Program-made: the position numbers and the translations under genes
Shown here: positions 10,553-60,196 of the stretch, piece after piece
Numbering within the stretch: position 1 is the first letter of the stretch
Layout of the letters: each line of letters begins with the position of its first letter
From: Lepidodermella squamata
Lineage: Eukaryota; Animalia; Gastrotricha
Length of the DNA stretch: 64,000 nucleotides
NCBI GenBank assembly: GCA_047495785.1
Contig: JBLDXI010000029.1
Coordinates: 1,488,001-1,552,000 of the forward strand
Direction: 5' to 3'
The notes under the pieces: generated by a model
Database searches by the model: none
Told to the model about the DNA's origin: nothing
What the model saw: the letters and a program-made list of their open reading frames with translations, nothing else

Positions 10553-11180
10553 TCGGCAAGGCTAGCTATTTTGAAGTTCAAAACTATCTATAACGAAGCC
10601 CTGCTAGCTTAATTTCGGACTGCTTAATTCTATTCTATTAATTCAATTCTTAATCTAATTATTATTATTATTATTACTATTATTATTATAAAATCCCGAG
10701 AAATTAACCATCTATTTTCTCGCAAAACTCTCTTTTAGGTTCTAACAACAAACCTGAAAGAGCCAGCACTGATTCAACAAAATCTTTCCCACCGAAATGT
10801 CATGATTCAGCTGAACATGTTCCGCTCCTTTCTCGAAGGTATACGCGGTCTTACGCAGTCTTAAATTATATCTTTGATCTGGCCGTGCAAAATTCGGCGC
10901 CAAAACATTCGAGCCAAAACCTCCGGAAGGCATGACACGCCACAAAATGTCTACAATTCAATCTTGGAATAAGGCTAACTGTCATGTAACAGAAAGTAAA
11001 ACGTGAGAATGTCTATCAGCCGATGCCATGTACCCGAAAGCAGGTAACGGAATGTTCAAAGAACCGAATGCAAACGTCATATTGTCAAATCTCCGATTGT
11101 CAAACACCCGAAAATTTTATAACATATTTTATTTGATCAATATCGTAACATTATAATAATCAAACACTAAATATTGTTAA

Positions 11181-11220
11181 TGTCTGAAGATGACGTCAGA
11201 TGACGTCAAAACGTCACAAT
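11181..11220 (+). ncRNA. Minimal hammerhead-ribozyme-like motif (Penelope-like element type), probably inactivated
   Basis: TGT-CTGAAGA-T-GACGTC-AGAT-GACGTC-AAAACGTC-ACA: CUGANGA core, perfect stem II, AAAA where GAAA is expected, GUC site, 3-bp stem I, AATAAA just downstream. Confidence 0.45.
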
Positions 11221-11482
11221 CTCAAATAAAAAAGGAAAATGGTCGCAAATTGTTTACATTAAAAATTTCAAAAAGAAACATCTAACTAAATATTACAGAG
11301 AAGTACAAATAAATTACAAAATCAGTATCTTTGTGGTAAATTTGTCGCATAACAATACTTCATGTAACAGTAGTAGGTTAAGCAGTAGGTTAAGGTCACT
11401 GGACACTGGTATAATATAGCTAATTAATTAAATACCAGCAGTAAAGACCAGCCATAAAATGAAATAGGAAAAATTAGCATCT

Positions 11483-33715: not shown

Positions 33716-35748
33716 TCAGGCATATCTCAACACAAGGAAGTAGAATATCTGTGCTGCAGGATCAGGCAGGTGGTTGTGCGCTACCCGAGAGTCGCCAAAA
33801 AGGATTTCAGTCAGGCTCAATGCCTTCTGCACCCACAGCATCTTGCGAGCATTATCCTCTATAGCAAGATTCTCATGGACCAAATTCACAGCCATCTCCA
33901 GGGCAGCGAAGATCAACCCTTTCGCCATTCTGCGTTCGAAAAGCCATTCAGCTGTTCGAATGGCCTCTTCATGCATCTCACAATCCGACTGCGTATAGTA
34001 TAGGGCAGTTTTTACAAGAAGAGAAACGTTGTCGAGCTCTGGAGTTTTCTCTCTCATCATGGCAACCTCATTGAACAGTTCTTCAAGGTGTTGGATAACA
34101 AGTTTAGCCATAATCGGAGGGAGATCATCACTGCCTCTATTCCTTATATCTTCAACCTCAGAGTAGATCTGGGAAATGCGATCTCTTACTTGTTTAGGCT
34201 CCGAACTTTCGAGAATGCACAACCGACAATTACAAACGCGGTCGTATTTTTTGTGAATTCTATCGCGTTCTTCGAGGGGCAAATCGTCCGGTACCAAATT
34301 GAAAAGGAGTGGTTCCCCGCATTGGACATCTCGAAAAGTGCGTATCATTGTAAAATCGCCAACATAAAACCCGTAACAATTTCCGTCCAAGCAGGTTGAC
34401 TCAAAAAAAGTCGGCTGGACCCAAAATCCGACCCCTGCATCAAGGCGTATCAGATCCCTTTTCGCGGTTCTCTTGACAAGCTCTCTATCCTCAGAATTTT
34501 GCATGTCATATGTAAGCTTTGAATTTGATTTGCCAGCTTTCGCTAGCCTGTTGAACATTACTGCTAGCCTTGGATTGTTATTCAAATGCTGAGCCACGAT
34601 CTCTGGCAAGTTTTCGACTACTTCACGCTCGGGCGAAAAGTACAGAGCTTTTGCAGCGCATACCAAAGTGCCAGCTGAAATTGATTTCTTTGCCACAGCT
34701 ATGGCACCAAATCCATCCACAGGACGTATTTCTACCATGTCTTCGTCAAAGTAATCGCTGTTACACAGGAAAGGTGATTCCTCAACTTCCTTATGCATTT
34801 GAAACACGTCGTATTGCCCATCTCTAGCTTCTTTCGTTCTTAAACGTAGTTTTTTGGATAGTTCATCAAGTTCGTTTTTAGGATTCAGCACTACAGCAGG
34901 GTTGGCCAGCAGGAATTCGCACTCTTCGAGACGTCTTAGAAGTAGCAATGCGTACGCTTTCCTAAATAAAAGACGCTCGTGATTTGGCTCCAGCACGAGG
35001 CCTTGCTCGGCTTGTTGAAGTGCGCAAAATCCATCCTTCACCTGGGCAAAAACTGCTGATTTATTAGAATAAAGGATGGGGTTGAAACGATCCTTTCCTA
35101 TGGCCATGTCGTAGGATTGTAGGGCACCGCCATAGTCTCCCTCCTTAAATTTTGCATTTGCAATTTCAGAGTTTCAGATTCGCTAATACTAATTGCTGGC
35201 AGCATATCCGGAGTATAGACATAATTTTGGAAATCTTCAGTTTCTACGCCAGTTAGCTGAACGATGTTTTTGCAGGAATTGCATACTATGGTTATGAAAA
35301 GTCCCTCATCCACAATAGAGAGTGGAGAGTTGAAACTTAGCATTGAGGCGACTCGTAATTTTCGCAGCCAATTAGTTGGAGCCGCTTTCACGAAGATCCG
35401 GAGCAGACGGTTATTCTGGGTTACGCATATCAGTTGCGTTATGTCTTTGCCGTTTATTGTTCGCCGTTTGAAGATAGATGCCACAGTAATTCCACGCTGA
35501 TTTTCGTCTTTCTGTTCAGCTTCGAAGACCAGCTCTTCTACCTTCTGACTTTCGCCTGCCTTCGAGACCTTCGTTTTGTCGGAAGCCGAGACGAACTGAA
35601 TTTTAGGCCTGTCACTATCAGCCTGCAAAATCAGCTTCCGCTGCTGAACAAAGAAAGCTATGATTTCTGGTTCCTGCCACCATAGTTTCGACATGTTTAA
35701 TAATCTAGAAAAGAAACGGTATTTTGAAGTGAAATGAGGCTGGCTCAT
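33716..35748 (-). pseudogene. TPR + SET domain gene copy 1 with a frameshift at ~35160
   Basis: ORFs 35098-35748 and 33716-35107 are the two halves of the paralog. TLKL continues as ANAKFKEGDYGGALQSYDMA in another frame (paralogs TLKAAGNENF, QLKLAGNEQF), consistent with a ~4-nt deletion. Could be an assembly error. Confidence 0.75.
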
Positions 35749-39315: not shown

Positions 39316-41322
39316 TTAAGTCATGACTTGAGGATGCATTGTTAATATAACTTGGAACTGGGCAGCCAAATTAATCGGTAAATGATATGCAGCAGCTCGT
39401 CGATCTCCAAACATTATTTCTGCAAGGCGCAGAGCGTCATTAGCCGCAGCGATGCTTCTCGAAACATTGTTCTGACATGAATACTCGCGATGCAGCATGA
39501 CAAGATACTCCAGCGAAAGCTTCCTGTTTGAAGTATTTTTTGTCAACCATTTCGCGATACGCAAAGCTTGCTCGTTCTCCGCCAGGCTAGAATAAGCATA
39601 ATAAAGTTCTAAATTCAGACGCTCCACGACATTGTTGATGCCTGAAGATTTGTCTCGCAAAGTGAAAGACTCTCGTAGCAGTAAATTCAGTGTAGTAATC
39701 GCCTCCTTCGTCATCGGAGGCGTCATGGCAATTTTTCTGTAAATTTCGCAAATTCGATTGCGGAGTTCCGCTCGCTCCGAACTTTCATAAAGGCACAATT
39801 TGCAGTTGCAGACATTCCCCATTCGGCGATAAATTTCATCCCTCGCCTCGAAAGGCATTTCTACACCAGAGAACTGTAGAAACAGAGTCTCCCCAGCTTC
39901 AACACGAACGATAGTCCTAATAAAGAAAAAATCCCCGACATGGAAGCCAAAGCAGTTGCCGCCATAACAAATATTTTGAAAAAAAATCGGCTGGAGCCAA
40001 AATCCTATTGCATTCGGAAAGGACGAACGGTATGAGTCCATTATTCTAAAATACGGCGATAGCGCATCCCAGTGTACTTCTAGGGAATTCTGGTTACTTC
40101 CTTGAAACACATAGCGAAGTCCCAGCTCATTCCTACGGCTTCCGGGATACATATTGAAATCTTGGAACATTTTTTCCAGTCGATTGTTTTCTTTAAGCCC
40201 TCGAATTATGGCTTTCATGGCAACAGTTTCGTGCAAATATCCGTTAGGAGAAAGATATAGCGCTTTAGCTGCACATAGCAAAGTTCCTGCTGGCAATGCT
40301 CTCTTCGCAACTACGGCATATGGGAAACCATCAACTGGCCGTATTTCTAGCGAATCCTCATCGAAATAATCGCCATGGTATAGGTAAGGCGATTTCTCAG
40401 CTTCTACATGCATTCTGAGAATGTCGTATTTCCCATCTCTAGCCTCTAGTTGGCATTGTTTTAAGGCCTTTCGAACTTCCTGAAAATCCTCATCGGCGAT
40501 GCATGAAACCAAAGGATCTTCCAATAGCATCTCGCATTCGCCGTAACGCCTTAAAATAAATAAAGCATACGCTTTTCTGTAGAGAAGACGCTTATTCAAT
40601 GGTTCAAGCTGTAATCCTAAGTTGGCTAGTTCGAGCGCCAAGGGCCCGTTATTCATCAAAGCGCAAACAGCTGACCGATTGGAGTAAATTATTGCGTTAA
40701 ACCGGTCTTCTACATGTGCGGCATCGTATAATTCTAAAGCTCGTTGTAAATTCCCATTGCGAAATTGCTCATTACCAGCGAGTTTAAGCTGTTCAGCAGT
40801 TTCCACGTTTATTGTAGGGATTCGTATAGCAGACTCAGCTGCCAAGGCAGCTGGAACACGACTGTCTCCGAGGTTCAAAGGCTGGATAGTCAACGCAGTG
40901 TCACACACTACGACCTCGGTATGGACATCAATCGAACTCATAGCCGAGTAAGTAAAAGGGGCGACGATATTTAAAACTGTTCTAACTGCCAATTTTTCTA
41001 GCCATGCAGGGGCTGACGAATTCAAAAAAAGCCGCCCAATCTTGCGACCTTCACGCATGAGAAGCAGCTGGGTAATCGGATGGTTTTCAACTGTGAACCG
41101 CTTGATTACCGGTGCCAGCAACATCGCTGGGAAAGTTTCGTCCGAGTGAAAAGGTTCTGCAATTATGATTAACTCTTCTCCGCCCCTTGCCGCCGTTGTT
41201 ACAGTTCCATGAGACTTCATAACAAATCGTACTTTGGGCCGGTCTCTCTCGTTCGTCAAAATCAGCTGTCGTTGAGCCACAAAGAAAGCTGTAATTTCTT
41301 CAACTGGCCATATTGAATCCAT
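39316..41322 (-). CDS. TPR + degenerate SET domain protein, 668 aa, single coding exon
   Basis: LKLAGNEQF...IYSNRSAV...LYRKAYAL; VVAKRALPAGTLL; GDFFFIRTIVRVEAGE; CNCKLC; clear paralog of the neighbours. Confidence 0.88.
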   Translation of the reverse strand: MDSIWPVEEITAFFVAQRQLILTNERDRPKVRFVMKSHGTVTTAARGGEELIIIAEPFHSDETFPAMLLAPVIKRFTVENHPITQLLLMREGRKIGRLFLNSSAPAWLEKLAVRTVLNIVAPFTYSAMSSIDVHTEVVVCDTALTIQPLNLGDSRVPAALAAESAIRIPTINVETAEQLKLAGNEQFRNGNLQRALELYDAAHVEDRFNAIIYSNRSAVCALMNNGPLALELANLGLQLEPLNKRLLYRKAYALFILRRYGECEMLLEDPLVSCIADEDFQEVRKALKQCQLEARDGKYDILRMHVEAEKSPYLYHGDYFDEDSLEIRPVDGFPYAVVAKRALPAGTLLCAAKALYLSPNGYLHETVAMKAIIRGLKENNRLEKMFQDFNMYPGSRRNELGLRYVFQGSNQNSLEVHWDALSPYFRIMDSYRSSFPNAIGFWLQPIFFQNICYGGNCFGFHVGDFFFIRTIVRVEAGETLFLQFSGVEMPFEARDEIYRRMGNVCNCKLCLYESSERAELRNRICEIYRKIAMTPPMTKEAITTLNLLLRESFTLRDKSSGINNVVERLNLELYYAYSSLAENEQALRIAKWLTKNTSNRKLSLEYLVMLHREYSCQNNVSRSIAAANDALRLAEIMFGDRRAAAYHLPINLAAQFQVILTMHPQVMT

Positions 41323-43291
41323 CTTTTGCTTTAATAAACGAAAATATTCTGTTGTAGCTGAGCCACCACCATCTACTCTGCGTTATCTCAATCCACTGGC
41401 GATAAAAACACAGTGACTCGGTTGGTATTGCTGTTCTTATCACTATTTGGCAGTAGTAATGCATTATTCTCTATAGGCATGATTCACCGAGTATCTTTGC
41501 GGTTGATCTCAAAGTCTGATGATTCGCTGGATTTCAGAAATAACTCGGAAAATTGAGATTTCCAGAGCGTCGCGCTTTTTACTAAGTTTGCCCAATGTGA
41601 CGGAATTTTTCACGTAGCTTTTACCTCTGATCCATTTTTTTTCCTTTTTTACCGTGTGCATATTCTATGGCACGGGACATGCCAATTTGTTCAATTTCCA
41701 ACAGCTTTTTCGATCGTAATCCACGAAGTTCTGTTCAGAAAGACATTTTGCCCTCGTTGACCCAATGCGGCGTTGTTGCCAACACATTTGCTATTATCGT
41801 ATAACGCGGAATTCTACTAAAGCAAATAAGGAAAACGCGAACGCATCACTAAATTGCACGCAACAGTTGATGAAAAATACGGCAACGACGATGATGATCA
41901 CAGGTACTATTTGATGAGATGAGAAGATACACTGGAGTGACAACCCGCTTCACCACCAAAATAATAACAATATACGTGAGGAGAATAAGGTGTGTTGAGA
42001 ATGAAAAGACCGACTTGCACCAGTGAGCGCGCGACACAACACCAGCAAGTGCGCGGCGAAACAAAAAATTAGCCAGTAATTTCACTTTTTTCCTCATAAT
42101 CACAATTTTTCGTGTCAATTTAATTTCAATTACTACTTGGGTATTAGGTATAATAAATCGGTGCGTTTCGCAGTATAGCATGCACGCGTGTCGACTTTGG
42201 CGCAGTTGCAGACCCGCGCGCAGCTGCGAGCACGAGTGAGCGAGTGAGAGTGCGCACGAGCGGGTGCACGCTTTTGTGCGCCGGAGACGTAGCAGTATAA
42301 CACACGTGCGACGCGACCACATTATACTACCTACAACCTACATATAGTCGAAGCGACTTGAAAGCGAAAAAGTTTCGGCCCGTCAAAGGAGCCTTTTTAT
42401 ACTTATTAGCCACATCAACGCTGTCTGGTGCGACGTCGGGCCTTACTCGTTCCATTTTATTTGTGACAATAATAAAAGTTTAGAAAACACTCGCAACACA
42501 ACAACAAACACATTTTCGGCTTCGGCTTCAACACGGTCTCGGCCCGGCATGCATATAACAACCGGTATTACCTAATGATGTTTATAGCCGGCGTTGTTGT
42601 CTTACCATAAGCACAACGGCTCTTGCAAAAATTTTGACGCGCTCAGCAAAATTTATTCTCGCGCGCTCGTTTAATTCGGCTAATATTTAAGTTTTTATAC
42701 TTACAACAACGGCGACTCGGCGTGGCTTTTCTTGTAATAGCCGTGTTTGTTGGTAATATACATCGGCATACGTAAATTAAATTTTATCGCCGCACGAGTC
42801 AGGTGTACAATATTTGTGCAACGGTTTTCTCCATTGTTCGCTTTGTTTATTTTCAGGTGACGCCTTGTTTTGCACGGCCCGAGTCGTGTGTTATTATAAC
42901 AAGGCCATTACCAGCTAAAAATTGCCACCAACACCACCGGGCAGACGCCGGCACTTGACATTGCCTCAACCAGAAGTTATGGCAATTTTATTTTTCCTCT
43001 ACCGCTTTTTAACGCATTTTATCCCGCATTTTATAGAAAATACTCCTAAATTTTATTAAAACACCTCGCCGCATTTTAAAATAATCCTAAATTTTATAAT
43101 GAAAGGAGGAATTTTTTCATATTTTTTGAATTTTTTGAATAATTTTGCTAATTTCATTAGAAATGTCATTGACCTGGCTATTTTAATCTTTAATTTTTTT
43201 AGAGATTTTCCAAGTAAATTTGTTAATGTTTTACGTTGCTGTCTTGTCATCAGCATTGTTTTGTACATGATCGAACGGATACATAGTATTT

Positions 43292-46200
43292 ATGAATGTA
43301 ATCTGGCTTCAACTTGTAACCACCGTCATCGCGACTTTGGCGCTGGTCGACAAGTCTAACGCTGGTAAAATTGATAAAAATTCAAATTTTAAGCTGGATT
43401 TTTCTGATTTAATTTTCCCAGACGATTCTTCCCCCCTCTACCCACCTCCTGAATCGCCATTGGACTGTCAATTCGAGGACGATTTCTGCGGATGGCAGCC
43501 CGCCGGCACAGGTTAGTCTACCTTAATATTTTTGAACATTTTTTGAAATTTTTGAAATTTTTCTAGATTTTTACCAATGGCAACGGCGCGGTTACATCGG
43601 CAACTTAACAAAAGACCTTTATTCGCCAACTGAAGGCTACCTCAGCTGTAAATATTTATTTTCAGTTTTTTTCAAAAATTCTGAAATTTTGCGAAATTTA
43701 GATAAATATACTTACGTGGACTCGAACCTGTGCACGGCTGGGCGGGCCGTTTGCCAGGCCGCTCTCGTCAGTGTGCCAATAATCCTGAATAGCAGTGACG
43801 TCAACCCGGTGTCTTCACTGACCTATAATAATTATAGCGACTCGCCATCGACCGCGCGCGCCGATTGGTGTTTCGAATTCTACTATTTTATTACCAATAA
43901 CCTAACATCTCACGAGTGAGTTGCCGAAAATCAAATTATCGAAAAATCTAGCTGATTTCTTTTCATAGATATGACATCGATGTATTTGTGGACAAGCCGC
44001 CAGATCTGTCGTCAGATTCGAATAAGCATTCTGTAGTCACCTCAGAAAATCCTGAATGGACGCTATCCGGGGCTGGTCGGGAGAATCCGATGGCGCTGAT
44101 TTCTGGCCAGTGGCGCCATGCTATTCTCGGGGTCAAACTCGGAAGCGGCATGCATCAGGTAACAAAGAATTCATTTTTGAAATTTTGAAAAAATTGAAAT
44201 TGAAATTTTTTAAATTAAATTACTTGAAAAATTTAGAAAATATATTTTTCAAATTATTTTTAGATCACCCTGGTGTCCCATATTACCAGAAGGACAACTG
44301 GGTCCGATTCGACCGGCAGCAATGTTGTAATAGCGATAGATGGAACCCGGCTGTATAAGGGGCAATGCGTCGGTTCGTTTTTTATCAATTTTTTATATAA
44401 TTATTTTTTCAAAATTTTTCAAAATTTTAGACTTGTTCGAACAGGACATATTGACCATGAGCTATTTACCGCACGAAGGTCACGCAGAAAACGGCGAGGT
44501 AGATAGTCACGGAACCGGAATTTTGGCGTCATATTTTTTTCATATAAATTTCTTAGATGATGGGCCAAGTTTACAACGCCGCAGTTTTGAATGACATGAA
44601 TTTATGGCCACGTGGGGTGATTCCTTACGCGATAAGTCCTGATTTCAGTGAGTCACCATGATTTTTTTTATCGATTTTTTTACGCGAATTTTTTTATCAG
44701 CCACACAAGAGTCGGATACGATTCGAAAGTCGATGAAGGAGTTTGAGAAGGCGACGTGCATTCGGTTTCGCTTGAAGACGACCGAGACGAATTATTTAGA
44801 TATTACCAAGGGTAGTTGGTGTTACTCGTTTGCTGGACGTGTCTTGCGGCCTGAGAAACAGCCACTCGCCTTGCATTCGTCCTGTTTGAACTTCGGAACT
44901 GTCCTCCATGAGCTCAATGTAAGTGATCCAAGATTTTCTCACGAGCTAAAGAGAATTTGCTAGCCGTTAATTTCCAAGTATTTACTGGGATTAGTTTTTG
45001 AAAATTAGAAAATACCAGGGTATACTGGGAATTGGAATTTTTTAGCAAAAAATTATAGGAAAATTGAGGTTCAAATTTGAGGATAGCTTGAAATTTACTG
45101 TTGAAAATTGAACATCTTGAACTGAGTTCCAAATGTTTATGAAAATCTTGACGATAATTTAACTCTGTAGTTATTGCCTCGAATGAAAATTTGGTGAACC
45201 AACCGAAATTATTCAAGATTTCAATTTTAACATTTTTCTTGGTATTTATTCTGGATGTTAATGACCAATTATTAAATTCTTCTAAATTTGTGTAATAACT
45301 TTGATGCTCCGTAAATTTTCCAACAGCATACCTCAGAATTGCGCAACCATTTTATAATTTTTCAAACTTTGGGAGAGTCGTCCAATTTTTCTGAAATTGA
45401 ACCAACTGAGAGCATTTCCCATCCACTTTAGGGGATTTCACCCGACAAATTTAACAAATTGGCGGAGAAAACTCGGAAAATCCAGTAACTGGTTCGGTAA
45501 TTTTCGGTGTTTTACCCTGAACCCAATTCTCCTGATTTTCCCTCTGAAAAGTGTCTTTCAGAATTATCATTCACAAAGCGATTTTTTCGAATTTTTTTGG
45601 CCAGGAGGCCATGACTTCACCTTTTATTTTAGACTTGGTGAACCCTTTCCTAATATTAGTTTCTTTGTTCTCGCTAATTTTGGGACACACCGCAACAAAA
45701 TTCTGCTACAGGCAATTTAGGCAAATTTTGATCCCGGAAATGTTGGCTAACGAAAAGAAAACTTTCTTTACAAAGATTTTGATCCTGAGATTTTCTAATG
45801 AACGACTTGATTAGACTTGATTCGTACCCCCTTCCTGTTATCTTACATATTATGGGATTTATTTTCATGTTAACAATTTTTCTAATTTATTTTATGTTAT
45901 TTTCTGAATTTATTACAGCATGCCGTAGGATTTTACCAGTAAGTTTTGATTTCCTAAATTCATCTGAATTTTTTATGATTTTCCTCGTTGATTCTAGTGA
46001 ACATTCTCGGTATGATCGCGACGACCACGTGACCATCCAGTGGGACAACATCGCCCCAGGCTCTTCGAACCAGTTCCAAAAGTACACCCTCGACCAGGTC
46101 GACCACCTAGGCCTGCCCTACGACTACGAAAGCGTTATGCACTACTCAAGAACGGCCTACGCCCGGCTGCCGGGCCTGACGACAATCGAGCCCAAAGTCA

Positions 46201-49200
46201 AAGGCTCCGTCATCGGCCAACGCGAGCGGTTGTCAGACCTAGACGTTCGTAAAATCAACAAAAAATACAAATGCCCAGACGGCACGAACCCGATTGACAC
46301 GCCGCAGACGAGTCTGAGCTGCAGTTTCGACTCGGGGCTTTGCGGGTGGTCGCAGCCGCACGACGGCGACCCACAGTGGACGATTTTCGACCCGGACCAG
46401 GCTCATTTCGAAGCCCCGATCTCGCCGGCTGCCTCGAGCAACGGAATGGCTGATATCGGCCGGCGATCTGCCGTAGTCGATCTAACCGGGGCTATCGACG
46501 TAGCCCGGCTCACATCGCCAATGGCCTACAATTCCGGCTGTTTCAGCTTCGCGTTTTTCTTCTCGAGAAACGGCCGAAAAGCGCTGAGGGCAATTTTGAT
46601 TGATAACAACACGGCTGAGACGGTTGTGTGGCAAATGTCGGATAATGGCGATGCTTCGGTGCCGGTCTGGCGGCGTGGCAAATTTGCTGTGCCGTTGTCG
46701 AATTTTAAAATTGCGATCGAGGCCGATCCGGTTGGAACTGGCCACGGCAGCATTGCGGTGGATGATTTCAATTTTACGGCTTCGATCAACGAGTGCGCTT
46801 TTATGCCGTCCGAAGCAAGTAAGTGCGATTAAAAATTGATATTTTCGTATATTTATTTTCCTTAATTATTTTCAAATTCAAAAATTTAAAATTTCAAGTG
46901 TTCAGAATTTTCTTAATTTTCTTTTTGATTTTTTTAAGTATTAATTATTAAATTAGAGTGAATTTTTTTCTTTTTTATGGCCAGATTAAAGTTTTCAATT
47001 TTTTCGATTTTTTCTGGCTTCACAATTTTTTCATTTGATGCGAAGATTTCGTTGATGAGACTTGGAATTTTTTATGATTTAGCATATTTTTCCAACTTTT
47101 TTTGATGTTTGAATTCCATTCACTGTCAAATTTCTCTTCAAAGACTCAGTTATCCAAACTGTAAGATCAGCAATTGATAGCCGGGGATCCTCTCGAAAAA
47201 ATCAATTTATTTTCCGTTGAATCAATCCGTAGAATTTCAAATACCTGAACCTTCAAAATCGAGCATTTAATCACATTTTAATCGAGTAAAATAATCGCAT
47301 AAATTAAGGAAATAATTGAATCATCGAATTATTTCAGCTAATAATTTTCTCACTGAGATCTGTCAATTTTACTGACTCTGATTATCGAAGATGCGGGTGA
47401 AATTTCGAATCGGTCTAATGAGCTTTGAAGGTTCAAGTCAGCGGGACAATAATACAGTTGCAAGGGGTTGGAGCAAAATTAATTCTGCCGAAATTTCTCG
47501 CTGAGATCGGCCGTTTCGCAAAGTTATTTCTGTTCCAAACTCTCGTTCGCCGTTCAAGTTCAAGCTTGCGCAAGGAAATCGATCGAGCTGCCGCGTCTCT
47601 GTGAACTCGGATCAACGATTTGAATCCCGATTTTCGCATGCGATTAGCAGACATTGGGACGAAGAAGTTTTTGTTCGCAACAGCACGGCGTCGCTGAGAT
47701 TTTGTGGGCAGGTAGCTTCGTCGAGGTTTATGCTTGAGGGAAATTCCGCGATTTTCGTACATGACCGAGCTGTTGTCGAGTGGGTCGATTCTCGATTGCG
47801 AAACGTGCCTATTCAGCCGATTTTTCAGCTCCTGATTTTCGTCAAAGCTCCGCCCAAGCTTCCAGGCTCTTGTCAAAGCTAAAGAAAATTATTTTTAATT
47901 ATTTTATCAATTTTTCATAAGTTTTTATTTACCTGGGTAGAGGAGGACAAATGCTGCGAAAGCGAGAAAAATATTCATTTTTAATTCTAAAATTGAAAGA
48001 AATTCTTATTAAGTTTCTATTTTAAACCGGCTTGAGGTCTTTTAATGGCATTAATTTATTTAAGATAATTTAGCAATTAGCTCTTGCTTGTTAGTCTTTG
48101 CCGTTGTGTCGTCGCTTAAATTCGGTAAAAATCGAGGACAATTTTAGAATTAATGTTAATGATATCAGTTATATTTAGAATATATATATAGAATATATAT
48201 ATATATATATAGAAAGTTGTACCACAACAGAGTCGAACCGACAACAAATTTTCAACGTCGAATTTTTTTTTACGCAAAATGAAATGGTAAATCCAACCCG
48301 CTGGATGTGTTCGAACATTTTTCAGCCGGGATTCATTTTTTCTATCATGGAGAATTGTACCCAATCCTGAAAAAGTGAAAATTGGCCATGCTATTCGCAA
48401 AAAAATCCGGAAATAAATAAATTCTCCTTATTTAATATTTCAACATTTCAACAAAATTAAACAAAAAATATCAGAAAAAAAACTATTTTTTCGGCGAATC
48501 AAGAAAAACGATAAATGACGTAATGGCTAGGCTTCCGCCGTTTCTTTGTCAGAATAGTTTCCTTGTTGTCGGCTTTCGGGGTGGCAACTTCTTTGTTCAG
48601 GCGATTTCGACGCCTTTTCTTGTAGCCTCCAAAAGATCCAGGCCTTGACCATTTCGCGCTTCTTTCGCTGAATGCCATCGAATTGGTGGATTTTGTGTTC
48701 GAATTCAATATCGGCAAGCGACTCAGAAATGGCCGGGTGTGGTCCAAAAATTTGGCGGTTGCTATATAAAACATAAGTCCATTTTAATTAAAATAAAAAA
48801 TATTTCCCTACCTTTAAGATTAAGGCTGGCGAGTAGAATAATGATAACAGCTAGTGTTAGAAAAGAAGTCATGATCTGAAGTAAAGTTAAATTCAATGGA
48901 CAACTTGAAAATTCGTGGTGTGTCTTATCGCTTCGGGATTCAAGGGTTCGAGCTAATTTGCGCTCGATTTGCGTCAGAACTCGACGGATGATGCAGTGTT
49001 GCTTATTTTTTGCAAGTTAGCTATCAAGTTCAAGTTCCGTTCTACGTAAATAGACCTAGGTGAACTACTTCAATTGCTTCAAGGAATTTAAAATTAAAAA
49101 TTTTTAAGACCTGTTGATACAGAGAATTTGAAAAATTTTGTGGGGGATATAAATTTAATTGAAGGAAATTCGAAGTGTCTAAGGAGAAAACGTGTTTATT

Positions 49201-52200
49201 TTCGTAAATTTTCTCAATCACGACATGCATAATTGTTCAGAGGTAAGAAACGATAATGAATAACTTCAGTCAAAATGAAAATCAACGAGTTCCGTTAGAA
49301 AAGTGTATTTATGAGGGTCCGGTGCGTTGATCCTCCGCCGCTTGTAGAATTTCTCAAATCTAGCCTTCATTTTCTTTTCCAATTTTTTCCTCAATTTGTC
49401 TCGCCGCCGTCTGTGTTCCAAGCTGCCGAAAGCTAGTGATTTCGAATGAAAATTGAATCTGCGAGCCAGTCGGTGAATAGTTTTCCTCGGCCGACCGGCG
49501 GACATTGAGGCGAAAACTGGCTTCGTCTGAGAACCGCGCCGTTTGTTGGTTTTCCTACCTAGAATTCCTCTCCTCCTCTCAGGAATTCGCTTGTTTGATG
49601 CCATCGATTGACCGGAATGGATAGCCAGGTTGTAAGATGGGAAAATATTTTTAGGAATAGCCATTCTTTGCTTCACCACCTCGTAATTTTCGCGATCATT
49701 CAGCGCGGCTCCAGAGACATCTAAAAATTGGAAGAATAAATGTTACTTATGTCATTTAAAGATTTAACCCAGTTTCGTTGCTGAAATCTTTTTAATTCAA
49801 AAAAATTCTTTTTGAAACTGATTGGTGATTTATTCATGGTAATTTTGAATTAGTCAGCTCACCTGTTTGCTTACAGATTACAAGGACAAAAAGCATGAAA
49901 AACGTCTGCATAGTTAAATTGTAATCTTCTAAATTGAAAATGATTGAAAATCTTCTAATCGTTTGGCACTTTCAAAATCTGTAAATCGTCCGCCGTAAAA
50001 AGTGGGCTAATGGTTTTGAACTAATCTTCTAAGATCAACCTTTCAAATCTCAGATGAAATGGAAAAAAACACGTCGAAGTGCGAACTTTTGATTAGGCTA
50101 ATTCTTGCCGATTCCCTATATCTGAAAAAAGATGGACCCGTCAAATTAGCTGATTAAAGTGTTTTTTCGGCGGAATCGTTTAGTCACATGGTACGTTAAT
50201 GAGATGCGAGAAGGACATGTCGACCATCTTACTTCGATTAATAACGAGACTCGGCTAATTATCTTTCTCGAGTTTGCTCAGTTACGAGTTGAAGGTACCA
50301 TAAAAAGCAAAAAAAGTTAAATTTCAGAAGCTTGAAAAGGGCGATTTTAGTCGAAGATGACGGGTGAATGATCCTATAAATTTGGCATCGTTGGATAGCC
50401 TGTATCGAGGGCTCTCAGGAACAATATAAAGAATACAAATTAACCACTTGTAATTCGGCGAAAATTCGCCAAAATTCGCTAAAAATTAGAAAATTGTCCT
50501 TTTTGAAAACTCTAATTTCTAGGGAAAAAATTAATTTTATTTATTACTTGTTTTTAATCGTAAAAATTAATTAACCTAATTATTCTGTAATTAAATTAAT
50601 TTTTATTAATTTGTAATACCATTTTTCCATACTTTTTTATTTATTTTTCAATTAATTAATATATTTTTCAATTAAACATTTTTCAAGGACCAACTGTCGA
50701 TATAAATTCCCCTTCCAACTCTGCATTCGAGCTGAACTGCACGTTCGAGCGCAGCGATTTCTGCGGTTGGATCAACGTTCGACAGGTCGACGAATTCGAC
50801 TGGGTGCTCAACAGCGGGCGCACGCTGACACCCTTCACAGGGCCCGCCTTCGACCACACCCTGGGCGCAGGGAACCCATGGGGAATCTACGCCTACGCAC
50901 CCGCCTCTAGCAAATCGCCCGGAAACACGGCCCGGTTAGTCAGCCCGGCTTTGACCGGCTACTCAAGCGTTTGCCTGCGATTCTGGTACCACATGTACGG
51001 CAACGCTATGGGCACCCTGCGGATCTACAAACGGCTGATAGGCGGGCGAAATTCCGGGGATGTGTTGAGTTGGGAAATTTCTGGAAATCAGGGTACGTCG
51101 TGGCATCTGGGCGATGTTCGAATGGCTGGCAGTCCTCAGGAGGTTTTCCAGCTCGTCTTCGAGGCAACAGTCGGCCAGGGCTCGCAGAGTGACGTAGCCA
51201 TCGATGACCTCAATGTGATGTTCGACGAAACGTGCCAGACCTCGCCGAATTACCCGGCGTCTGAGGCGGGTCGTAATTCGATGTCGAACAGCATAGGCGG
51301 CGATACATCGCGGCCGGTTGATAGCGGCGACGGGGATGGCGATTGGCCGATGTTGGCGAATAATTTCAGGTACCGGCAGACCACGACCCGGCCGGCTATG
51401 ATGCCGTCTGGCCAGTTCTTGGGCCGCACTACGTCGATTGGGCGCACTTTCGGCCGCGTTTCTTCGTTCAGTATGAACCCGTATACGTACCAGAATCGAG
51501 CGATTACGACGAAGAGCCAGCCTAGCAACCGTAAGTCCTTTTGAAATAAGAAGAAATAAGATGAACCAAAATGGAGCCGTATCTCTACTCTTAGCCAGAA
51601 CATTTTACAAGCCATGAGAATAGTAATTAAGTATGAAACTTCAAAATGGGAATAAATGATTCGGGAAGAATGGAGTTAGAGCTGGTAAAACACGAACATT
51701 TCCGAAACAAATGCCATCCAATTTGGGGGTTTCGGGTTTTTTCTCCGGTAAATTGGCAATTTTTTCGATGAAATCGTACATAATGGGTTTCATTCTTTTA
51801 AGATGAATAACTTGCTTGCAAGAAACTAATACTTGGTATAAAAAAAACTAAGCACTTTGGTAAAAATATCGAAAATGTGCCCAATTCATTTGAAAAATTG
51901 TTATTCCTTTAGAAAATTCTGAAGTGATTCAAGCCTAACTATCCATTAAAAAATTCTCGTAATTGAAAAAAAATCAAAATTGTAAACCTCAATATCACAG
52001 CGGATGCACAGCTTGTTCCAAAATTTGCGCAATGATTTTTAATGTGGCAACTTTTTGTGGTAAATTAACTGGTTTTATTAAATTAAACCTACCGAGAGGA
52101 TATTCCATCTTTTATTCTTGATTCAACGGTAGAAATAACAAATTTTCGAGAAAAAACCCGGTAACCCCTATGGTAACTGGCTCGGTAATTTTCGGTTTTT

Positions 52201-55077
52201 CTCGGTTGGACCACTTTTTTCCGGATTTTTTGAATCCCATTTCCTAGTGACATACTTCATTACGTTTTGAATTTTTTTGGCCATGAGATTTGGCTCATTT
52301 AGGAGTTTCTGTACCCTTTTCCATGTATTTTCTGCTTACTTCTGGGACACACTGTACCAGTAAATGTTGGGGGAGCTTCAAAAATTTCCTTGAACCTTGA
52401 AAAATGTAAGAATGAATCAGGATTTCAAATTTCCGGAATAAGCAGCAATTCACTTTTGGTTGAGCATTTTCCTGTAAATTAGTGTCCGAAATTAATTGTT
52501 AGAGTCCAACTTGATGCAAATAGCTTCAAATCGGCAAAAATCGTGTGAAAATCGAAAAATCGATCCGATTTATAGAAATCACTTAGTCATTATAATGAAA
52601 TACCATAATTTTTGGAATAAAAAATAATTATATATCTCAACAATCACGGCCGCGTCCAAAATTATGCTGCTTTAGGAAATTGTTCGCTTGGGTAATTTGA
52701 TTGGGAATCGGGAATTTCCCCAACCTTGAGTTACCGATGTTCGATATTAGAATTATATTTCCACTGTAGTAATTTATGGAATTTGACTAAATTTTAGCCC
52801 TGTAAAACTACACGCAGGTTTTAGCCTTGTTTTTACAATCAACTCGGTTTTTTAGGCCTTATTCTTAACAGAGTGCTATAAACGTTTTATTTTCTATTTT
52901 CTAGAACAAATTTTGTTCTGCAACTTTGACGCAACAAACGTCTGCAACTGGGTTCAGGACGAAAGCCAGGACGACTTCGACTGGCAGCTGAACCGCGGCC
53001 TAACGCCATCCCGCAACACCGGCCCCATGGCCGACCGAACCACCGGCTCCAGCTCCGGGTCCTATCTCTACCTCGAGGCGAGCAGCCCGCGTCGAATGGG
53101 CGACCTCTCCCGGCTGAAGAGCCCGCTAATCACCAACCAGCCGCTAACAGGCTGCTTCCAATTCTGGTACAGTATGTACGGATCCGGCATCGGCGAGCTG
53201 CGAATTTTGACGACAAGCGCGGCGGATGGGTCGCGGCGCCTTTTGTGGCGCCTTGTGGGTGAGCAGGGCCCTGATTGGCTGCGGGGTCAAGTGTGGATTG
53301 ACCTCGAACCGAGCGGTGGGAAAATTTTCATCGAAGGCATAGTCGGCCAGTCGTACCTGGCCGATATCGCCATCGATGACTTGAGCTTCACGTCCGAGCA
53401 TTGCGAGACGTACCCGCAGCATGCGGGCATGATGCCGGATGAGGGCCTCACCTCGGAGGAGCAGCGCGACCCCCTGCCGACCCCGTCGACGGTGGATGAC
53501 GTTGTCATGCGGACGGTGACTGTCGACCCGGCGTCGGTTGAGATGATGGTGGTTGGAAGTGATGAGCCGATAACGGCGTGTTCGTTTTTGATGGGCGACT
53601 CGTGCGAGTGGCAGTTTGTGAAGGATGGCGATGCTTACTGGTACCACTCGAGGACTTACCCGTTGCAGGGAACTATGCCGCGGACAAGCAAATGTGAGTT
53701 GTTCATTTCAATTTGAAAATCTCGTAAAAAATTTGAATTTGGAATAGGTATAAAAAACTATAAGGGCTCAGTAGGCATTCAAAATTCAAAATTATCCATG
53801 ATCCGGAATAATAATACGAAATAAACTCGGAAGTTCAATCTATGAATAATCAAAAGTTAACGAAATTATCAACGATCGGAAAATTCGGAAAAACGGGGAC
53901 AAAAGGGACAAAAGGGACAAAAAAGTTCGAAAATTTGAATGAAAAATCAACGGATATTTTGGCCTTATTTTCGCTAGCCCAATCCGCGTAAAATAAAACA
54001 TGGAAACATTTTCGTCATTCCGGGTAAAATACCAAAATTACCGATCCAGTTGCCAGTCGGGGATTTCCGGGTGAATTTTTAATTATTTGTACTTCTTGAA
54101 TCGCGGATAAGAGACAGAATATTCTCTCGGTAGGTTCAATTTATTAAAATTAGTTGAAGTTTTCAAGAAAAGTTGCCAAATTCAAAATAGCTGCTTAACT
54201 TCCGGGACACGCCATACGAGCGTAGGTCGGGATTTTTGAAATGGCAGACAGAATTCATCCCTGAAATACGAAGAATTCACTGCCAAATTGAAAATTTAGC
54301 TTGTAATAAAGTTTTGAATATTAACTTTTGAAAAATATACGAACACTTGAGATGAATCAGAGTGATTTTCGAGCTTCATAGGAAAGTCTTAAATCAGGTT
54401 GAGCAAAGACCTAAATATTACCAAAAAACTTCAAGTTGAAAATTAAAATTTTCTGGTCTCATTTAATTTTTTTATGAATTTTTTTCTACAGTTACCGACT
54501 ACATATACATCCTCTCCGATTGGCTGCAGTCGTGGAAGAGCGTCTCTCTAGTCTCGCCCTACGTCGATCTTGACTCGTCGTCAATCTGCCTCAAGCTCAA
54601 CTACTTCATGACCAGCGCATCGGACTCCCTGACTGTCAAGTTCAAGTGTAAGTTCAAATTTCATTTCCATAAATGACCATGAAATGATTCTGAGGATCTG
54701 CGTGGTTTATAAACTGAATTTTTTTAATAATTACATGAAATTTCTCATTTATTTTTGGCTTATAAAATATACGGAATAATTAATCATCGGCTCAATTTAT
54801 TATTTAAATAATTGATTTATTTTCTTCAGATGGCGATGGCTCTGAGGGTGCCACCGTTGTAGTTGTGTCAAGCTCTTCGGCCGAGGCGAAATCCTCCGAA
54901 ATTTCCACGATTTCTGCCCCTGGCGACTACCCTCAATGGCGCCAGGTCACGCGAACCCTGTCACCGTCTCGGCCGGGCAGTTTCAAAGTCGCGATAGTGC
55001 TACAACACGGCCAGGCGTGGAACGGCGCCATCGGCATAGAATCAGCCAAGATACTACCAGGCCGTTGTCGGCGATAG
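43292..55077 (+). CDS. Secreted astacin (M12A) metalloprotease with five MAM domains (SP-MAM-pro-astacin-MAM x4), multi-exon
   Basis: Signal peptide; CQFEDDFCGW MAM; LFEQDI pro-segment; WPRGVIPY; CIRF; CYSFAG; spliced HELNHAVGFYHEHSRYDRD; YDYESVMHY Met-turn. MAM exons 45998-46818, 50688-51530, 52905-53693, 54492-54647 and 54830-55077 all join in phase 1. Confidence 0.9.
47433..47978 (-). CDS. Nested secreted Arg/Lys-rich protein A; exons 47978-47933, 47878-47433
   Basis: MNIFLAFAAFVLLYP|ALTRA signal peptide joined through a phase-1 GT-AG intron to the basic ORF 47433-47876. Confidence 0.75.
48499..48872 (-). CDS. Nested secreted Arg/Lys-rich protein B; exons 48872-48812, 48761-48499
   Basis: MTSFLTLAVIIILLASLNLK|ATA signal peptide, 50-nt phase-1 GT-AG intron, basic mature region (GYKKRRRNRL, TKKRRKP). 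Confidence 0.72.
49266..49911 (-). CDS. Nested secreted Arg/Lys-rich protein C; exons 49911-49863, 49720-49266
   Basis: MQTFFMLFVLVICKQT|DVSG signal peptide, phase-1 intron GTGAGC..TTTTAG. 39 of the last 137 residues are K/R by hand count. Shares motifs with protein A. Confidence 0.75.
52000..54230. repeat. Dispersed intronic repeat: forward copies ~45390-45720 and ~52000-52360, inverted copy ~53990-54230
   Basis: GTAACTGGYTCGGTAATTTTCGGT at ~45485 and ~52173, reverse complement at ~54030-54057. GGCAACTTTT...AACCTACCGAGAGGATATTC (52046-52107) is mirrored at 54117-54177. Confidence 0.7.
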
Positions 55078-55999: not shown

Positions 56000-58381
56000 A
56001 TGACGCCAACGTCATCTTATATACAGATGGATGCTTTACTGACCCAGCATCACTTCGCAATTTGCCGAAAGATGAGGATTGTTAACATTTTGCTTATTCT
56101 CTCTCCACTACATCTCGCATTGACTCAGAACACGAGTACGCTGGTGATTCTGACCCAGTTGCCTTCGTCTTTTGAAAGATGCCACTTCGCGGTCAATCTC
56201 GTAGAGGAAATCGTCAACGAACACAATTTACTCCCTGGCTATCGCGTCAAATTTTTGATCAAAGACGAGCAAGTCTACAGTGGCAACGCCGCCGCAGAGG
56301 GTGTTAAATTCGCCGACCAAATACTGGCATCAAACAATACCTTCAAATCTCCGATAACTGTTGGCCCAATCGCCACCCAGGGTTGTAGAGCATGGGGCTC
56401 GATCGCGAATCATTACAACATGGTGATGATAGCTGGGTCTTGCACTGCCCCTAGCCAAACAGCCAGGCGCGATCTTTACCCGAATATGTACAGAGTTCGC
56501 GGCCCGGCAGAACTCGGCCTCGTCACTCGTCTTCATTTCATAAAACAATTCACACCCTGGAAGAAGCTGGCTCTAATCGTTGAGTCAGGTAATGTATTTG
56601 CTATTCAAACTGGAATTTTCTTCCATGACATCGCGACAGCTAACGGGATTAAGGTCCAGCCCTTCGAGGTATTTCTTGATATCAACGACGAGTTGATGCA
56701 ACTGCTGAAGAAAAATGATGTCAGAATCTTCGCGTTTGAACATTCAGACCCAGCAATGTCGCAACGGTTTCTTTGCCAGGCGTTCAAAAGCGGGTTCACG
56801 GGACGCCGTTTTACCTTCTTCATTCCATCTATTGCTTTTTTCGAGCCATCGCCAGGCCAGGCCTACCCAAGCGGCTGTTCAAGAGAGAATTACATTGAGC
56901 AGTTAAAATCAGTGATTGTCGTTGGTTCTGTCGATGTTGCACCTATCATGCCATCCCGAGTTGATGAATTAGGCATTTCGCAAGCGTCATTTGAGAGAAT
57001 TATCTCAGAAAGAGCGCAAAATCTGTCAAGAGTGGCCGAATCTTATCGCGGAAGTTGCTACGACGCCGCTCTTCAAGCAATTGTCGCTCTCAATGAAACC
57101 GAGAAAAAGCTTTCGAAGCTTAATATGAGCCTGAAGGATTACCAACAATATCCTGAACTTTTTATGAAGATAGCGAACCAAACTACTAGTTCAATACGTT
57201 ACGAAAGTTTGAGATTCAGCAATTTTCGTTACTCGCGCCGTTTAGAGTGGGACTACGAGCCCCAGGCGGTCATGACTTGGCAGCAGGGAAAAGGCTTGAT
57301 TGCTCGATACGTCGGAACACTGATGGCGAACGCAACGAATTTCAACGAGCCAAATATCATCACGTTCACAACAATTAGGCCCATCGACGCAAGTTCCCTA
57401 ACTCGTGACTCGCCTGCTGTTTATACTATAGTTACGGGGGTACCATTGGCCATTTACATCATTTTAACTATCACCGCAATCAGCTTTTTCCTTTTCCAAG
57501 TTATTTTCGTTGCGAAGAGACTCAGTATCGACAAAGAAAGACATAAAGTTATAGCGACCAACTTGCATTCGCTTATAAGTTACTTTTTTCTCTCTCTCAC
57601 CATTCCATTGCTTTCAATGCCCTTCAATTTTCGTTCGAACACGGTTTGCAATGCGGCGATTTTCGTTCTTGCTTTTGGTGTATCGTCATTTTCAAGTGGA
57701 CTAGTAATTCGGGTCATCAATTACCACGTCTTGTTACGTCGCCATTATGCACATGCACACAAGCCTGTTGGGTTAGAACGTATGCATTCAAACAAGACGA
57801 CATTTTCTATTGGATCAGCCAAGTCCCAAAACGTTCATCGAGTTGACGTTGAAATCAGGGGGGAACTACTTGCTTCATCTACGACCATTTACACAACTGC
57901 TGTCATTGTAATCGTTTTAGCTTGGCTATTCGCGGACCCAGTATTTGCTGAGTTGGTCTCTGATCCCATTGCTCTTTATGATGAAGTTGCCGATGCTTAC
58001 ATGATAACGCAACGGAAGATATGCCAATCTAAACGAGCATCTGCCTGGGTGGGAACTCTTGTCATTCTGAACTTCGTGCTGATTCTGTTTGGCTTGATTT
58101 TTGTGCTAAAGTTGCAAGCCATGGCGCAGTATTTGAAAATGTATCCAGAGGTGAAATCGGTTAATTTTTCGATGGGAATCACATCGTCCTTATTTTGTGC
58201 GTCTGCTGCCATTGGTTACATTATGGCCTCTAGCTTCCAATTTGACATAATTTTATGTGTATTCCTGCTGGCCACATCGGTATCGCACTCATTATTACAT
58301 CTGATGCGTTATAATGGAAGTAAGGTTGTAGCACCGTCACGCCCACAATCACGATTCGGAAGCCCTTTCAGGCAAATTTGA
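56000..58381 (+). CDS. Orphan class C GPCR, GABA-B-like, single coding exon (likely start Met 56072)
   Basis: MRIVNILLILSPLHLALT signal peptide; LLPGYRVKF, RRDLYPNMYR, FIKQFTPWKK, DVRIF, FLCQAFKSG, CYD, FRYSRRLEWDY shared with 23505-25826; 7TM. Confidence 0.9.
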   Translation: MTPTSSYIQMDALLTQHHFAICRKMRIVNILLILSPLHLALTQNTSTLVILTQLPSSFERCHFAVNLVEEIVNEHNLLPGYRVKFLIKDEQVYSGNAAAEGVKFADQILASNNTFKSPITVGPIATQGCRAWGSIANHYNMVMIAGSCTAPSQTARRDLYPNMYRVRGPAELGLVTRLHFIKQFTPWKKLALIVESGNVFAIQTGIFFHDIATANGIKVQPFEVFLDINDELMQLLKKNDVRIFAFEHSDPAMSQRFLCQAFKSGFTGRRFTFFIPSIAFFEPSPGQAYPSGCSRENYIEQLKSVIVVGSVDVAPIMPSRVDELGISQASFERIISERAQNLSRVAESYRGSCYDAALQAIVALNETEKKLSKLNMSLKDYQQYPELFMKIANQTTSSIRYESLRFSNFRYSRRLEWDYEPQAVMTWQQGKGLIARYVGTLMANATNFNEPNIITFTTIRPIDASSLTRDSPAVYTIVTGVPLAIYIILTITAISFFLFQVIFVAKRLSIDKERHKVIATNLHSLISYFFLSLTIPLLSMPFNFRSNTVCNAAIFVLAFGVSSFSSGLVIRVINYHVLLRRHYAHAHKPVGLERMHSNKTTFSIGSAKSQNVHRVDVEIRGELLASSTTIYTTAVIVIVLAWLFADPVFAELVSDPIALYDEVADAYMITQRKICQSKRASAWVGTLVILNFVLILFGLIFVLKLQAMAQYLKMYPEVKSVNFSMGITSSLFCASAAIGYIMASSFQFDIILCVFLLATSVSHSLLHLMRYNGSKVVAPSRPQSRFGSPFRQI

Positions 58382-58816: not shown

Positions 58817-58849
58817 TATTTAAGACGCACTATTTGCTTCGATTCATTC
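58817..58849 (+). promoter_or_regulatory. Putative core promoter of the sHSP gene (TATA-like box + initiator)
   Basis: TATTTAA at 58817 lies 29 nt before the A of TCATTC (58846). A two-unit nGAAnnTTCn at 58705-58714 is only a partial heat-shock element. Confidence 0.4.
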
Positions 58850-58934
58850 ATCACTTGCTCATTTGAAATTTTCATTTCAAGCTTATTCGCTTTCTTTTCT
58901 TTCGCTTTCGTGTGTTTTCAAACTTCCGACTAAA

Positions 58935-60196
58935 ATGGCCGCCACCTACACCTTCCAACCGACCTACCCGACCGTCGCCCCGGTCTCCGGCTACGCCAGC
59001 CCGGTCAATGTCGAGAGCCTGCTCCGCAACAAGGTCGACATCTACTCGACCCTGAGCAACGAGCGCAGCCTCATCAACAACACCTTCTCGCAGCCGATCG
59101 TTGCCCCGACCCCGTCGATGATCAACGCCCCGGTCATGCCGACCCCGTTCGCCCGCGTCCCGACCCCGTACTCGAGCCCGATCGAGCGCCCGGTCGAGAT
59201 TGCCCGCGCCTACGGAGCCGAGACTGGCATCCAGCTGGCCCAGATCATCGCCGCCCGCATGGCCCCGATCGCCCAGCCGCAGTTGGTCCAACCGATCGCC
59301 GCCCAGTGGGGTGCTGAGATCTGCGCCCAGATCGCCGTCGAGCTCGCCCTCGCCCCTGTCGATGCTGAGATCACCAGCCGCCGCTGCGTCATCCGCGCTG
59401 CCGAGCAGGGTGCCCGCCTCGGTGCCACCGTCGCTCAGCGCCTCGCCTGCGGCCCGGTCGAGATCGAGCAGGCCGCTCGCATTGGCCAGGAGCTGTTCGC
59501 CGACATCTGCCAGCGCATCACCGCTCAAATCTTCGCCCGCCAGTGGACCGGCGTCAACCCGGCCTCGTGGATGACCTGGGGTCGCCCTGAGACCTTCGGT
59601 GCCAACACCTGGTTCAACGCTCCCGTCCACCACGACAAGCTGTACAACATCGCCTTCCGCCCATCCAGCGAGGTCGAGCTGTACACCCTGTCGAACCCGA
59701 TCCGCGTCATCGACACCGAGGGCAACCGCCAGCTGTGCCTCGTCTTCGCCCTGAAGAGCTACAAGCCGGAGGAGATCACCGTCACCCTGAACAAGGCCGA
59801 GCGTGCTGTCGTCATTGAGGCCGCCCACGAGATCAAGGACGGCAAGGAGCACCAGATCAGCCGCAAGTACTCGCGCAAGTTCGTCCTCCCCGAGGTACGT
59901 AGTTTCGATGAACGCTTTTATTCGAGCTATAACATTTTCGTCTTCTTTTGCAGACTCTTGCCAAGATCGACCTGACCAAGGTTGAGCTCAAGTCGTACCA
60001 GACCGCCGAGGGCTACCTGGTCGTCGAGTGCCAGCTGCCGAAGATGACCACCGAGGAGATCATCAACCAGTGCCCGGCCATGTCGCACATGCCCTTCTAC
60101 GGCCTGCCGATGACCGGTGCCTTCAACGCCCGCCTGCCCGCCTACCACACCGAGCTGGTCAACAACGTCCGCCCGGTCACCGTCAAGACTGCCTAA
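58935..60196 (+). CDS. Small heat-shock (HSP20/alpha-crystallin domain) protein with long N-terminal extension, ~400 aa; exons 58935-59894, 59954-60196
   Basis: FALKSYKPEEITVTL..VVIEAAHE..ISRKYSRKFVLPE|..ELKSYQTAEGYLVVECQLP is an alpha-crystallin domain. 59-nt phase-0 intron. Extreme C/G-ending codon bias. Confidence 0.9.

Follow-up and report, generated by a model that had tools for sequence, protein, structure and literature searches.

Putative genes for secreted, basic proteins nested antisense in a long intron of an astacin-MAM gene of the gastrotrich Lepidodermella squamata

What fills an intron of 3.9 kilobases (kb) in a stretch of genome whose introns are few and mostly very short? The question is raised by a meprin-like astacin-MAM gene that runs on the plus strand from ~43.3 kb to 55.1 kb of a 64,000-nucleotide (nt) stretch of the Lepidodermella squamata genome (assembly GCA_047495785.1, contig JBLDXI010000029.1, positions 1,488,001 to 1,552,000), which we call the window and in whose coordinates all positions are given. 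The window is eukaryotic and has a guanine-cytosine (GC) content of ~41%, and a value of 43% has been reported for L. squamata (PMC11660948). An earlier note on this DNA had proposed that the intron hides three minus-strand genes, each composed of a signal-like mini-exon, a phase-1 intron and an exon rich in lysine and arginine (K/R) and poor in cysteine; upon re-reading, this layout was found on all three and the coordinates proved exact. The reading that we favour, and consider probable with some reserve as a whole, is that these are three independent small protein-coding genes, here named A, B and C, which are nested antisense in the intron of the host gene and have secreted basic products. 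Its parts differ in strength. A is very probably a real gene, C has good chances of being one, and for B the balance leans towards a gene.

The models (Table 1) were built by reading the minus strand and by testing every in-frame acceptor. Along this strand the gene order is C, B, A, with all exons within 47433-49911 (-) and wholly inside the host intron; the whole coding region of each gene lies in one host intron on the opposite strand, which makes the three genes nested. Their introns are all of phase 1, with GT[AG] donors and with acceptors that follow a T-rich tract, and those of A and B (50-54 nt) belong to the same size class as the short introns found elsewhere in the window and in the homologous locus described below. 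Poly(A) signals (AATAAA, ATTAAA or AGTAAA) are present 60-66 nt 3' of all three stops, with AATAAA 66 nt from the stop of C and ATTAAA 63 nt from that of B. The predicted mature parts carry a net charge of +17 to +28 and comprise ~143 residues in A (isoelectric point (pI) 11.8, 23% K+R, two cysteines, both C-terminal), ~86 in B (pI 11.5, 26% K+R, no cysteine) and ~146 in C (pI 11.6, 27% K+R, no cysteine). A strong acceptor-like site is also seen 3-17 nt 5' of each ATG (ttcaattttag, ctttacttcag and ttcaatttag on the minus strand; 47979-47995, 48873-48880 and 49912-49935), a feature absent from most other genes of the window. These sites could be acceptors of introns in the 5' untranslated region or trans-splice sites; no literature on spliced-leader trans-splicing in gastrotrichs was found. 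Upstream of the genes, no promoter motif common to all three was found, and TTTCAATTT near the ATG is common to A and C only.

The evidence of selection on A comes from a DNA sequencing run of 2024 (X2), which holds the window sequence along with a second, diverged copy that may represent a haplotype, a homeologue or another strain. The comparison of the two copies takes in the best-supported differences, referred to as listed, beside which there are 65 further ones, and the numbers on selection are approximate. Over ~47499-47818 (106 codons of A), 12 of the 14 listed substitutions are synonymous and the remaining two are conservative (V to F and V to I), while third codon positions account for 10 of the 14 and second positions for none. 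Given 77.7 synonymous and 240.3 non-synonymous sites, the probability of at least 12 silent changes out of 14 is 2.5e-6. The silence is specific to the frame, as only 1-3 of the 14 listed changes are silent in the antisense open reading frame (ORF) and in the two other minus-strand frames. Similarly, the two listed insertions or deletions (indels) in exon 2 of A measure 3 and 6 nt and are both in frame, whereas the ten listed noncoding indels (1, 1, 4, 3, 1, 1, 2, 1, 1 and 4 nt) include a single multiple of three. A is under purifying selection in exactly the predicted frame. In addition, the silent changes at codons 30 and 33 and the V to I change at codon 38 all lie 5' of the first ATG within exon 2 (codon 39); because silent and conservative changes precede this ATG, translation of A must start upstream, as it does in the spliced model. 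As to the other two genes, the X2 contig at 48519-49069 shows two differences, both in the intron of B, among the differences listed, and the contig at 49121-49589, which covers part of C, is identical to the window. The ratio of non-synonymous to synonymous rates (dN/dS) between the two genomic copies of A is ~0.05, a value at odds with the earlier description of the family as fast-evolving. Indeed, the constraint on A argues against fast evolution in recent time, though the two paralogues A and C have themselves moved far apart in sequence.

Are the reading frames more than chance would provide in such DNA? In 1000 first-order Markov simulations of the host intron, one stop-free run of at least 147 codons occurred in 5.7% and two occurred in 0.2%, and the minus strand of the actual intron has two such runs, with 158 and 151 codons. 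The intron has its main GC islands in the three second exons (0.45-0.51 in A and C, 0.46-0.49 in B) and is mostly at 0.13-0.39 elsewhere, with smaller peaks outside the models of 0.45 at 48919 and 0.43 at 50319. These run lengths and GC islands exceed chance. A scan of both strands for mini-exons (GT[AG] preceded by an ATG and 13-23 codons that include a hydrophobic decamer) returned exactly three matches in the 3.9-kb intron; they are the three proposed first exons, all on the minus strand, all of phase 1 and each placed just 5' of a basic ORF. Over the window, the same pattern has a density of 0.32 per kb per strand, true genes counted in. Two measures of codon usage were abandoned. The codon log-likelihood by frame gave the predicted frame the top rank among all six in each of the three genes, and was dropped when out-of-frame runs over known genes scored equally high. 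The synonymous-codon test seemed decisive and was then found not to be frame-specific, in a genome with almost no codon bias, and it therefore shows only an exon-like GC content.

The host intron is itself documented by a second run (X1), a small RNA-like one of 2015 that consists of contigs only. Around the intron, its contigs are confined to 46522-46804 and 50688-51000, and a loose end at 46819 reads ACCAACTGT, the sequence found at 50689-50697, thus marking an exon-exon junction. Since the contigs stop at the exons and the junction is read at 46819, X1 behaves as RNA and shows both that the intron 46819-50687, as the earlier note had named it, is genuine and that there is expression of the host gene.

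Table 1. Parts of the host gene and of the three nested gene models in the window
Feature	Position	Strand	Details
Host 5' part: signal peptide and MAM-like start	43292	+	
Host astacin, N-terminal half	44658-44960	+	
Host exon: astacin C-terminal half and first listed MAM	45999..46818	+	5' limit provisional; Pfam Astacin 3.4e-30, MAM 2.3e-13
Host intron	46819..50687	+	phase 1, GTAAGT...AG, 3.9 kb; contains genes A, B and C
Host exon 3' of the intron: linker and MAM	50688..51300	+	3' limit provisional; Pfam MAM 2.2e-29; covered by X1 contigs
Host further MAM	52913-53716	+	
Host MAM fragment	near 54808-55074	+	
Gene C exon 1	49863..49911	-	ATG + 16 codons + 1 nt (MQTFFMLFVLVICKQT), then donor GTGAGC
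Gene C intron	49721..49862	-	142 nt, GT..TTTTTAG, phase 1
Gene C exon 2 with stop	49266..49720	-	full protein 167 residues
Gene B exon 1	48812..48872	-	ATG + 20 codons + 1 nt (MTSFLTLAVIIILLASLNLK), then donor GTAGGG
Gene B intron	48762..48811	-	50 nt, phase 1
Gene B exon 2 with stop	48499..48761	-	full protein 107 residues
Gene A exon 1	47933..47978	-	ATG + 15 codons + 1 nt (MNIFLAFAAFVLLYP), then donor GTAAAT
Gene A intron	47879..47932	-	54 nt, GT..AG, phase 1
Gene A exon 2 with stop	47433..47878	-	full protein 163 residues

Do the three genes form a family? Judged by their sequences, A and C are distant paralogues. They align colinearly with 28% identity, their local alignment scores 67, against 36 +/- 6.8 for a set of 2000 shuffles, of which 3 reach that score (z=4.6), and BLASTP gives E=2e-4. 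The conserved blocks are, in order, F-x-x-MSA-x-R-x-RK, SL..LE.RR and RIN(F)AP.P, so that the ordered motifs claimed earlier for this pair are real and significant. For B, the motifs said to be shared with A and C are present, but the similarity is not significant by BLASTP or by shuffled Smith-Waterman alignment with either protein (z=0.6 and 1.0), and the comparison of B with an A+C profile by hhalign is colinear but insignificant (probability 3.9%, E=0.011). Since the similarity of B is not significant, the proposed family of three is demonstrated for two members only, A and C, with the kinship of B left unproven; B is either a third copy that was shortened and diverged strongly, or a gene of like design with no kinship to the other two.

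How old is the arrangement? A relative of the host exon (P0001, 80% identity) was found on an ENA metagenome scaffold, and positions 8297-12827 of this locus (L001) are colinear with the whole host gene (43271-55074 in the window), at 4.5 kb vs 11.8 kb and hence 2.6 times more compact; the amino acid identity over the host exon 45999..46818 is 81%. The corresponding phase-1 intron of L001 interrupts the identical arginine codon behind CAFMPS[ED]A, and it is 64 nt long with no nested gene. No match to A, B or C was returned by tblastn on all 17 kb of the locus. The homologous introns of L001 are 58-64 nt long, and one extra intron before 'LNCTFER' is absent in the window. Because the flanking genes differ (aldehyde dehydrogenase and trypsins in L001, G-protein-coupled receptors (GPCRs) in the window), L001 may be either an ortholog or a paralog of the host gene; in both cases, as the homologous intron is short and empty, the presence of nested genes in the intron is not ancient. 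The earlier suggestion of a lineage-restricted trio agrees with its absence from a colinear homologue of ~80% amino acid identity.

A search for relatives was conducted with A and C in large protein sets and, for B, in Pfam, in the comparison with A and C and by tblastn on L001. Pfam has no match for any of the three. For A and C, nothing was retrieved by a word-indexed protein search of 5.8 billion clusters, by features in the ESM Atlas, by a sequence search of the PDB or by scans of the metagenomes of the Joint Genome Institute (JGI), and an exhaustive phmmer search of A against 1.84 billion representatives found no homologue. Within these searches, no known domain or family was found for A and C, as had been surmised, and no Pfam domain for B, and no RNA family of Rfam was found in the window. 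AlphaFold2, run without an alignment, returns helices and disorder with no fold, at a predicted local distance difference test score of 60 for A and 65 for C and a predicted template modelling score of 0.19 and 0.34, respectively. At this low confidence, the elements follow one another in the same order in the two models: a short helix at the N-terminus precedes a long stretch of low confidence, after which come a second short helix, placed behind the MSA block, and finally a long basic one. In the model of C, helices are predicted at 101-128 and 136-150. When the latter was compared with the PDB by Foldseek, the best hits (E=2.4; basic ribosomal proteins and histones) were meaningless. An origin from a transposon or repeat was considered and rejected, as there was no Pfam match, there were no terminal repeats, only AT-rich chance repeats were seen and the X2 depth was like that of the flanks, the last also indicating that the A/B/C region is single copy.

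What can be said of the products? Each first exon encodes a methionine followed by a hydrophobic core of 10-15 residues, with TRA|W, ATA|K and SGA|A as candidate -3/-1 sites at residues 20-23. By the heuristics used here, these leaders are equal to or better than those of the host astacin and of the GILT-like genes in the window, in line with the signal-peptide-like N-termini that the earlier note had seen on all three, and the products are fairly likely to be secreted. The same note had pointed to dibasic and Gly-basic sites as hints of amidated peptides or their precursors. Such sites do exist, but dibasic pairs exceed what composition predicts only in C (17 vs 10.7, P=0.007), with 7 vs 7.4 in A and 8 vs 5.3 in B (P=0.11), and Gly-basic sites, at 0-2 per protein, are at the level of shuffles in all three, so that the hint is not upheld. 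An antimicrobial role, also suggested, gains nothing from the maximum 18-residue amphipathic moment, which amounts to 0.34-0.62 and is not above shuffles (P=0.32-0.97). No repeats are evident in the three proteins, no dedicated test for protein repeats or low complexity having been run.

Taking these features together, the following sequence of steps is proposed. The first mini-exon of each gene would supply most of an N-terminal signal peptide, with the predicted cleavage site straddling the phase-1 intron, and the second exon would supply an R/K-rich product of 86-146 residues, with a pI of ~11.5-11.8, almost free of cysteine and non-repetitive. For A and C, the prediction is of a mostly disordered product containing one or two long basic helices, and the two genes would derive from one ancestor via tandem duplication. 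Once secreted, the products may bind a polyanionic extracellular partner via their basic helices, with matrix or cuticle glycans, an egg or mucus coat and microbial surfaces as candidates, and the blocks conserved between A and C might then be specific contact sites. The polyanion-binding role in particular is put forward tentatively and is open to considerable doubt. We see no functional tie to the host protease, and nesting would be just a matter of gene location.

Several observations weigh against this account. In X2, two short contigs cease to match at 47499, with 22 codons of A still to come before its stop, and run on with 22 and 27 unlike letters; the second copy therefore has an insertion or rearrangement in the last 22 codons of A, and it may be damaged, interrupted or endowed with a different C-terminus. 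These 22 codons carry the RINFAPTP block shared with C. For B and C, the evidence is intrinsic, and the codon measures tried do not separate frames in this genome. X1 gives no coverage of A, B or C, while the host exons are at a word depth of 4-25. The three genes are not abundant transcripts in the X1 sample; since the run is small and made of contigs only, it is weak negative evidence on transcripts and argues against high expression. Moreover, the signal peptides are putative, being judged by heuristics, and no sequence statistic points to a specific function.

Some of these points favour an alternative in which only A, perhaps along with C, works, and B, possibly C too, would be decaying duplicates or chance ORFs provided with a plausible mini-exon. 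The ORF of B spans only 87-94 codons, and chance alone would give ~2.3 stop-free runs as long as this in the intron; its likeness to A and C falls short of significance, including in the profile comparison at 3.9% probability, codon measures are uninformative, and none of the three has evidence of expression in X1. However, B has a GC island of its own and a poly(A) signal, and its hydrophobic mini-exon with an ATG is followed by a canonical phase-1 intron of 50 nt that leads exactly into the ORF, in a window where mini-exon patterns number only ~0.3 per kb per strand even with true genes counted in, and C combines its 158-codon open run with significant similarity to the constrained A. We consider this alternative unlikely, while granting it some weight. 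A different possibility is that the basic bodies are intracellular nucleic-acid binders and that the mini-exons are mis-joined or act as anchors. The R-rich make-up, the long basic helices, the RRRR and KRRR clusters, which resemble nuclear localisation signals, and a weak, non-significant likeness to ribosomal protein eL19 and histones (best E=2.4) would fit such a role, but selection on A reaches 5' of the first ATG within exon 2, implying a start in an upstream exon, no ATG exon other than the hydrophobic one is both in phase and provided with a donor, and the same design is seen three times, all of which makes intracellular function very improbable.

If the products are secreted, they might instead be precursors of the prohormone or neuropeptide type, cut by convertases at dibasic sites and with some of the peptides amidated. 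The signal peptide with many K/R pairs, the excess of basic pairs in C (17 vs 10.7, P=0.007) and the basic end of the conserved MSA-x-R-x-RK block speak for this, whereas the dibasic pairs of A and B are as composition predicts, Gly-basic sites are at chance in all three, there is neither a repeated peptide unit nor acidic spacers, and conservation in A spans ~106 codons rather than short peptide cores only; a precursor role appears quite improbable. Gastrotrichs have adhesive tubes (PMC11660948), which lends some appeal to the idea that the proteins are parts of a bulk secreted material such as glue, coat or cuticle. This idea is nevertheless hard to reconcile with proteins that, by inspection of their sequences, are not repetitive or of low complexity, with the failure to detect A, B and C in X1, where the host gene assembles, and with the lack of an upstream box common to all three genes, and we regard it as improbable. 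Our preferred reading thus remains that of three nested genes with secreted basic products.

How does this reading compare with known systems? The human NF1 intron holds the small antisense genes EVI2A, EVI2B and OMG. As in NF1, a single long intron of an unrelated host harbours several small genes in their entirety, on the opposite strand and with no functional link required; unlike in NF1, the nested genes here are orphans, two of them are mutually paralogous, and the intron is 64 nt long and empty in L001. Cecropins and cathelicidins share with A, B and C a signal peptide followed by a strongly cationic, cysteine-poor and partly helical product, the latter being predicted here. They differ in length (86-146 residues here vs 20-40), and A, B and C have an amphipathic moment at shuffle level and no family match, while A is under strong purifying, not diversifying, selection. 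Likewise, neuropeptide and prohormone precursors have a signal peptide and multiple K/R pairs, but A, B and C lack repeated peptide units, and A and B show no dibasic or Gly-basic enrichment.

Other genes of the window were also noted. A series of tandem genes for secreted GILT-like proteins occupies the minus strand (~3229-3352, 7262-7295, 13078-13123, 18269-18281 and 22716), with a common motif made of a signal peptide and then AGLP.NLTAY.PVAV..YF[EQ]S. Only the copy at 22384-22716 matches Pfam GILT (1.2e-7) and retains the CPDS motif; in the other copies, which have SSAC or GQND at that position, the redox cysteine may be lost. The astacin gene is flanked by two genes for class C GPCRs (ANF_receptor + 7tm_3), at 23505-25826 (-) and 56000-58381 (+), which consist of nearly intron-free ORFs of 773-793 codons. 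ORFs of 463-689 codons without a Pfam domain, at 30528-32597 (+), 33716-35107 (-) and 39316-41322 (-), may be further orphan genes. Finally, 58824-59987 is the GC-richest stretch of the window (0.54). Both of its strands carry open frames, of 371-383 codons, and the minus-strand frame tested has no Pfam match; the stretch might be a gene of low complexity, a foreign element or a repeat element.

What, then, would the finding mean? On present evidence, no new mechanism or system is revealed. Since the homologous intron is 64 nt long and empty and no relative of A or C was detected, the A/C ancestor may have arisen de novo or diverged beyond recognition in the lineage. In a scenario of recent gene birth, this would have taken place inside an expanding intron, followed by duplication in place and then by strong purifying selection (omega ~0.05); we judge the scenario distinctly unlikely, and, if true, it would provide a case, open to dating, in which a new family of secreted proteins became essential. 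If the three genes are confirmed, annotated and selectively constrained orphan genes would be added for a poorly studied small animal, and the 64-nt empty intron of L001 makes the locus a clean test case for how and when genes for secreted proteins appear in introns.

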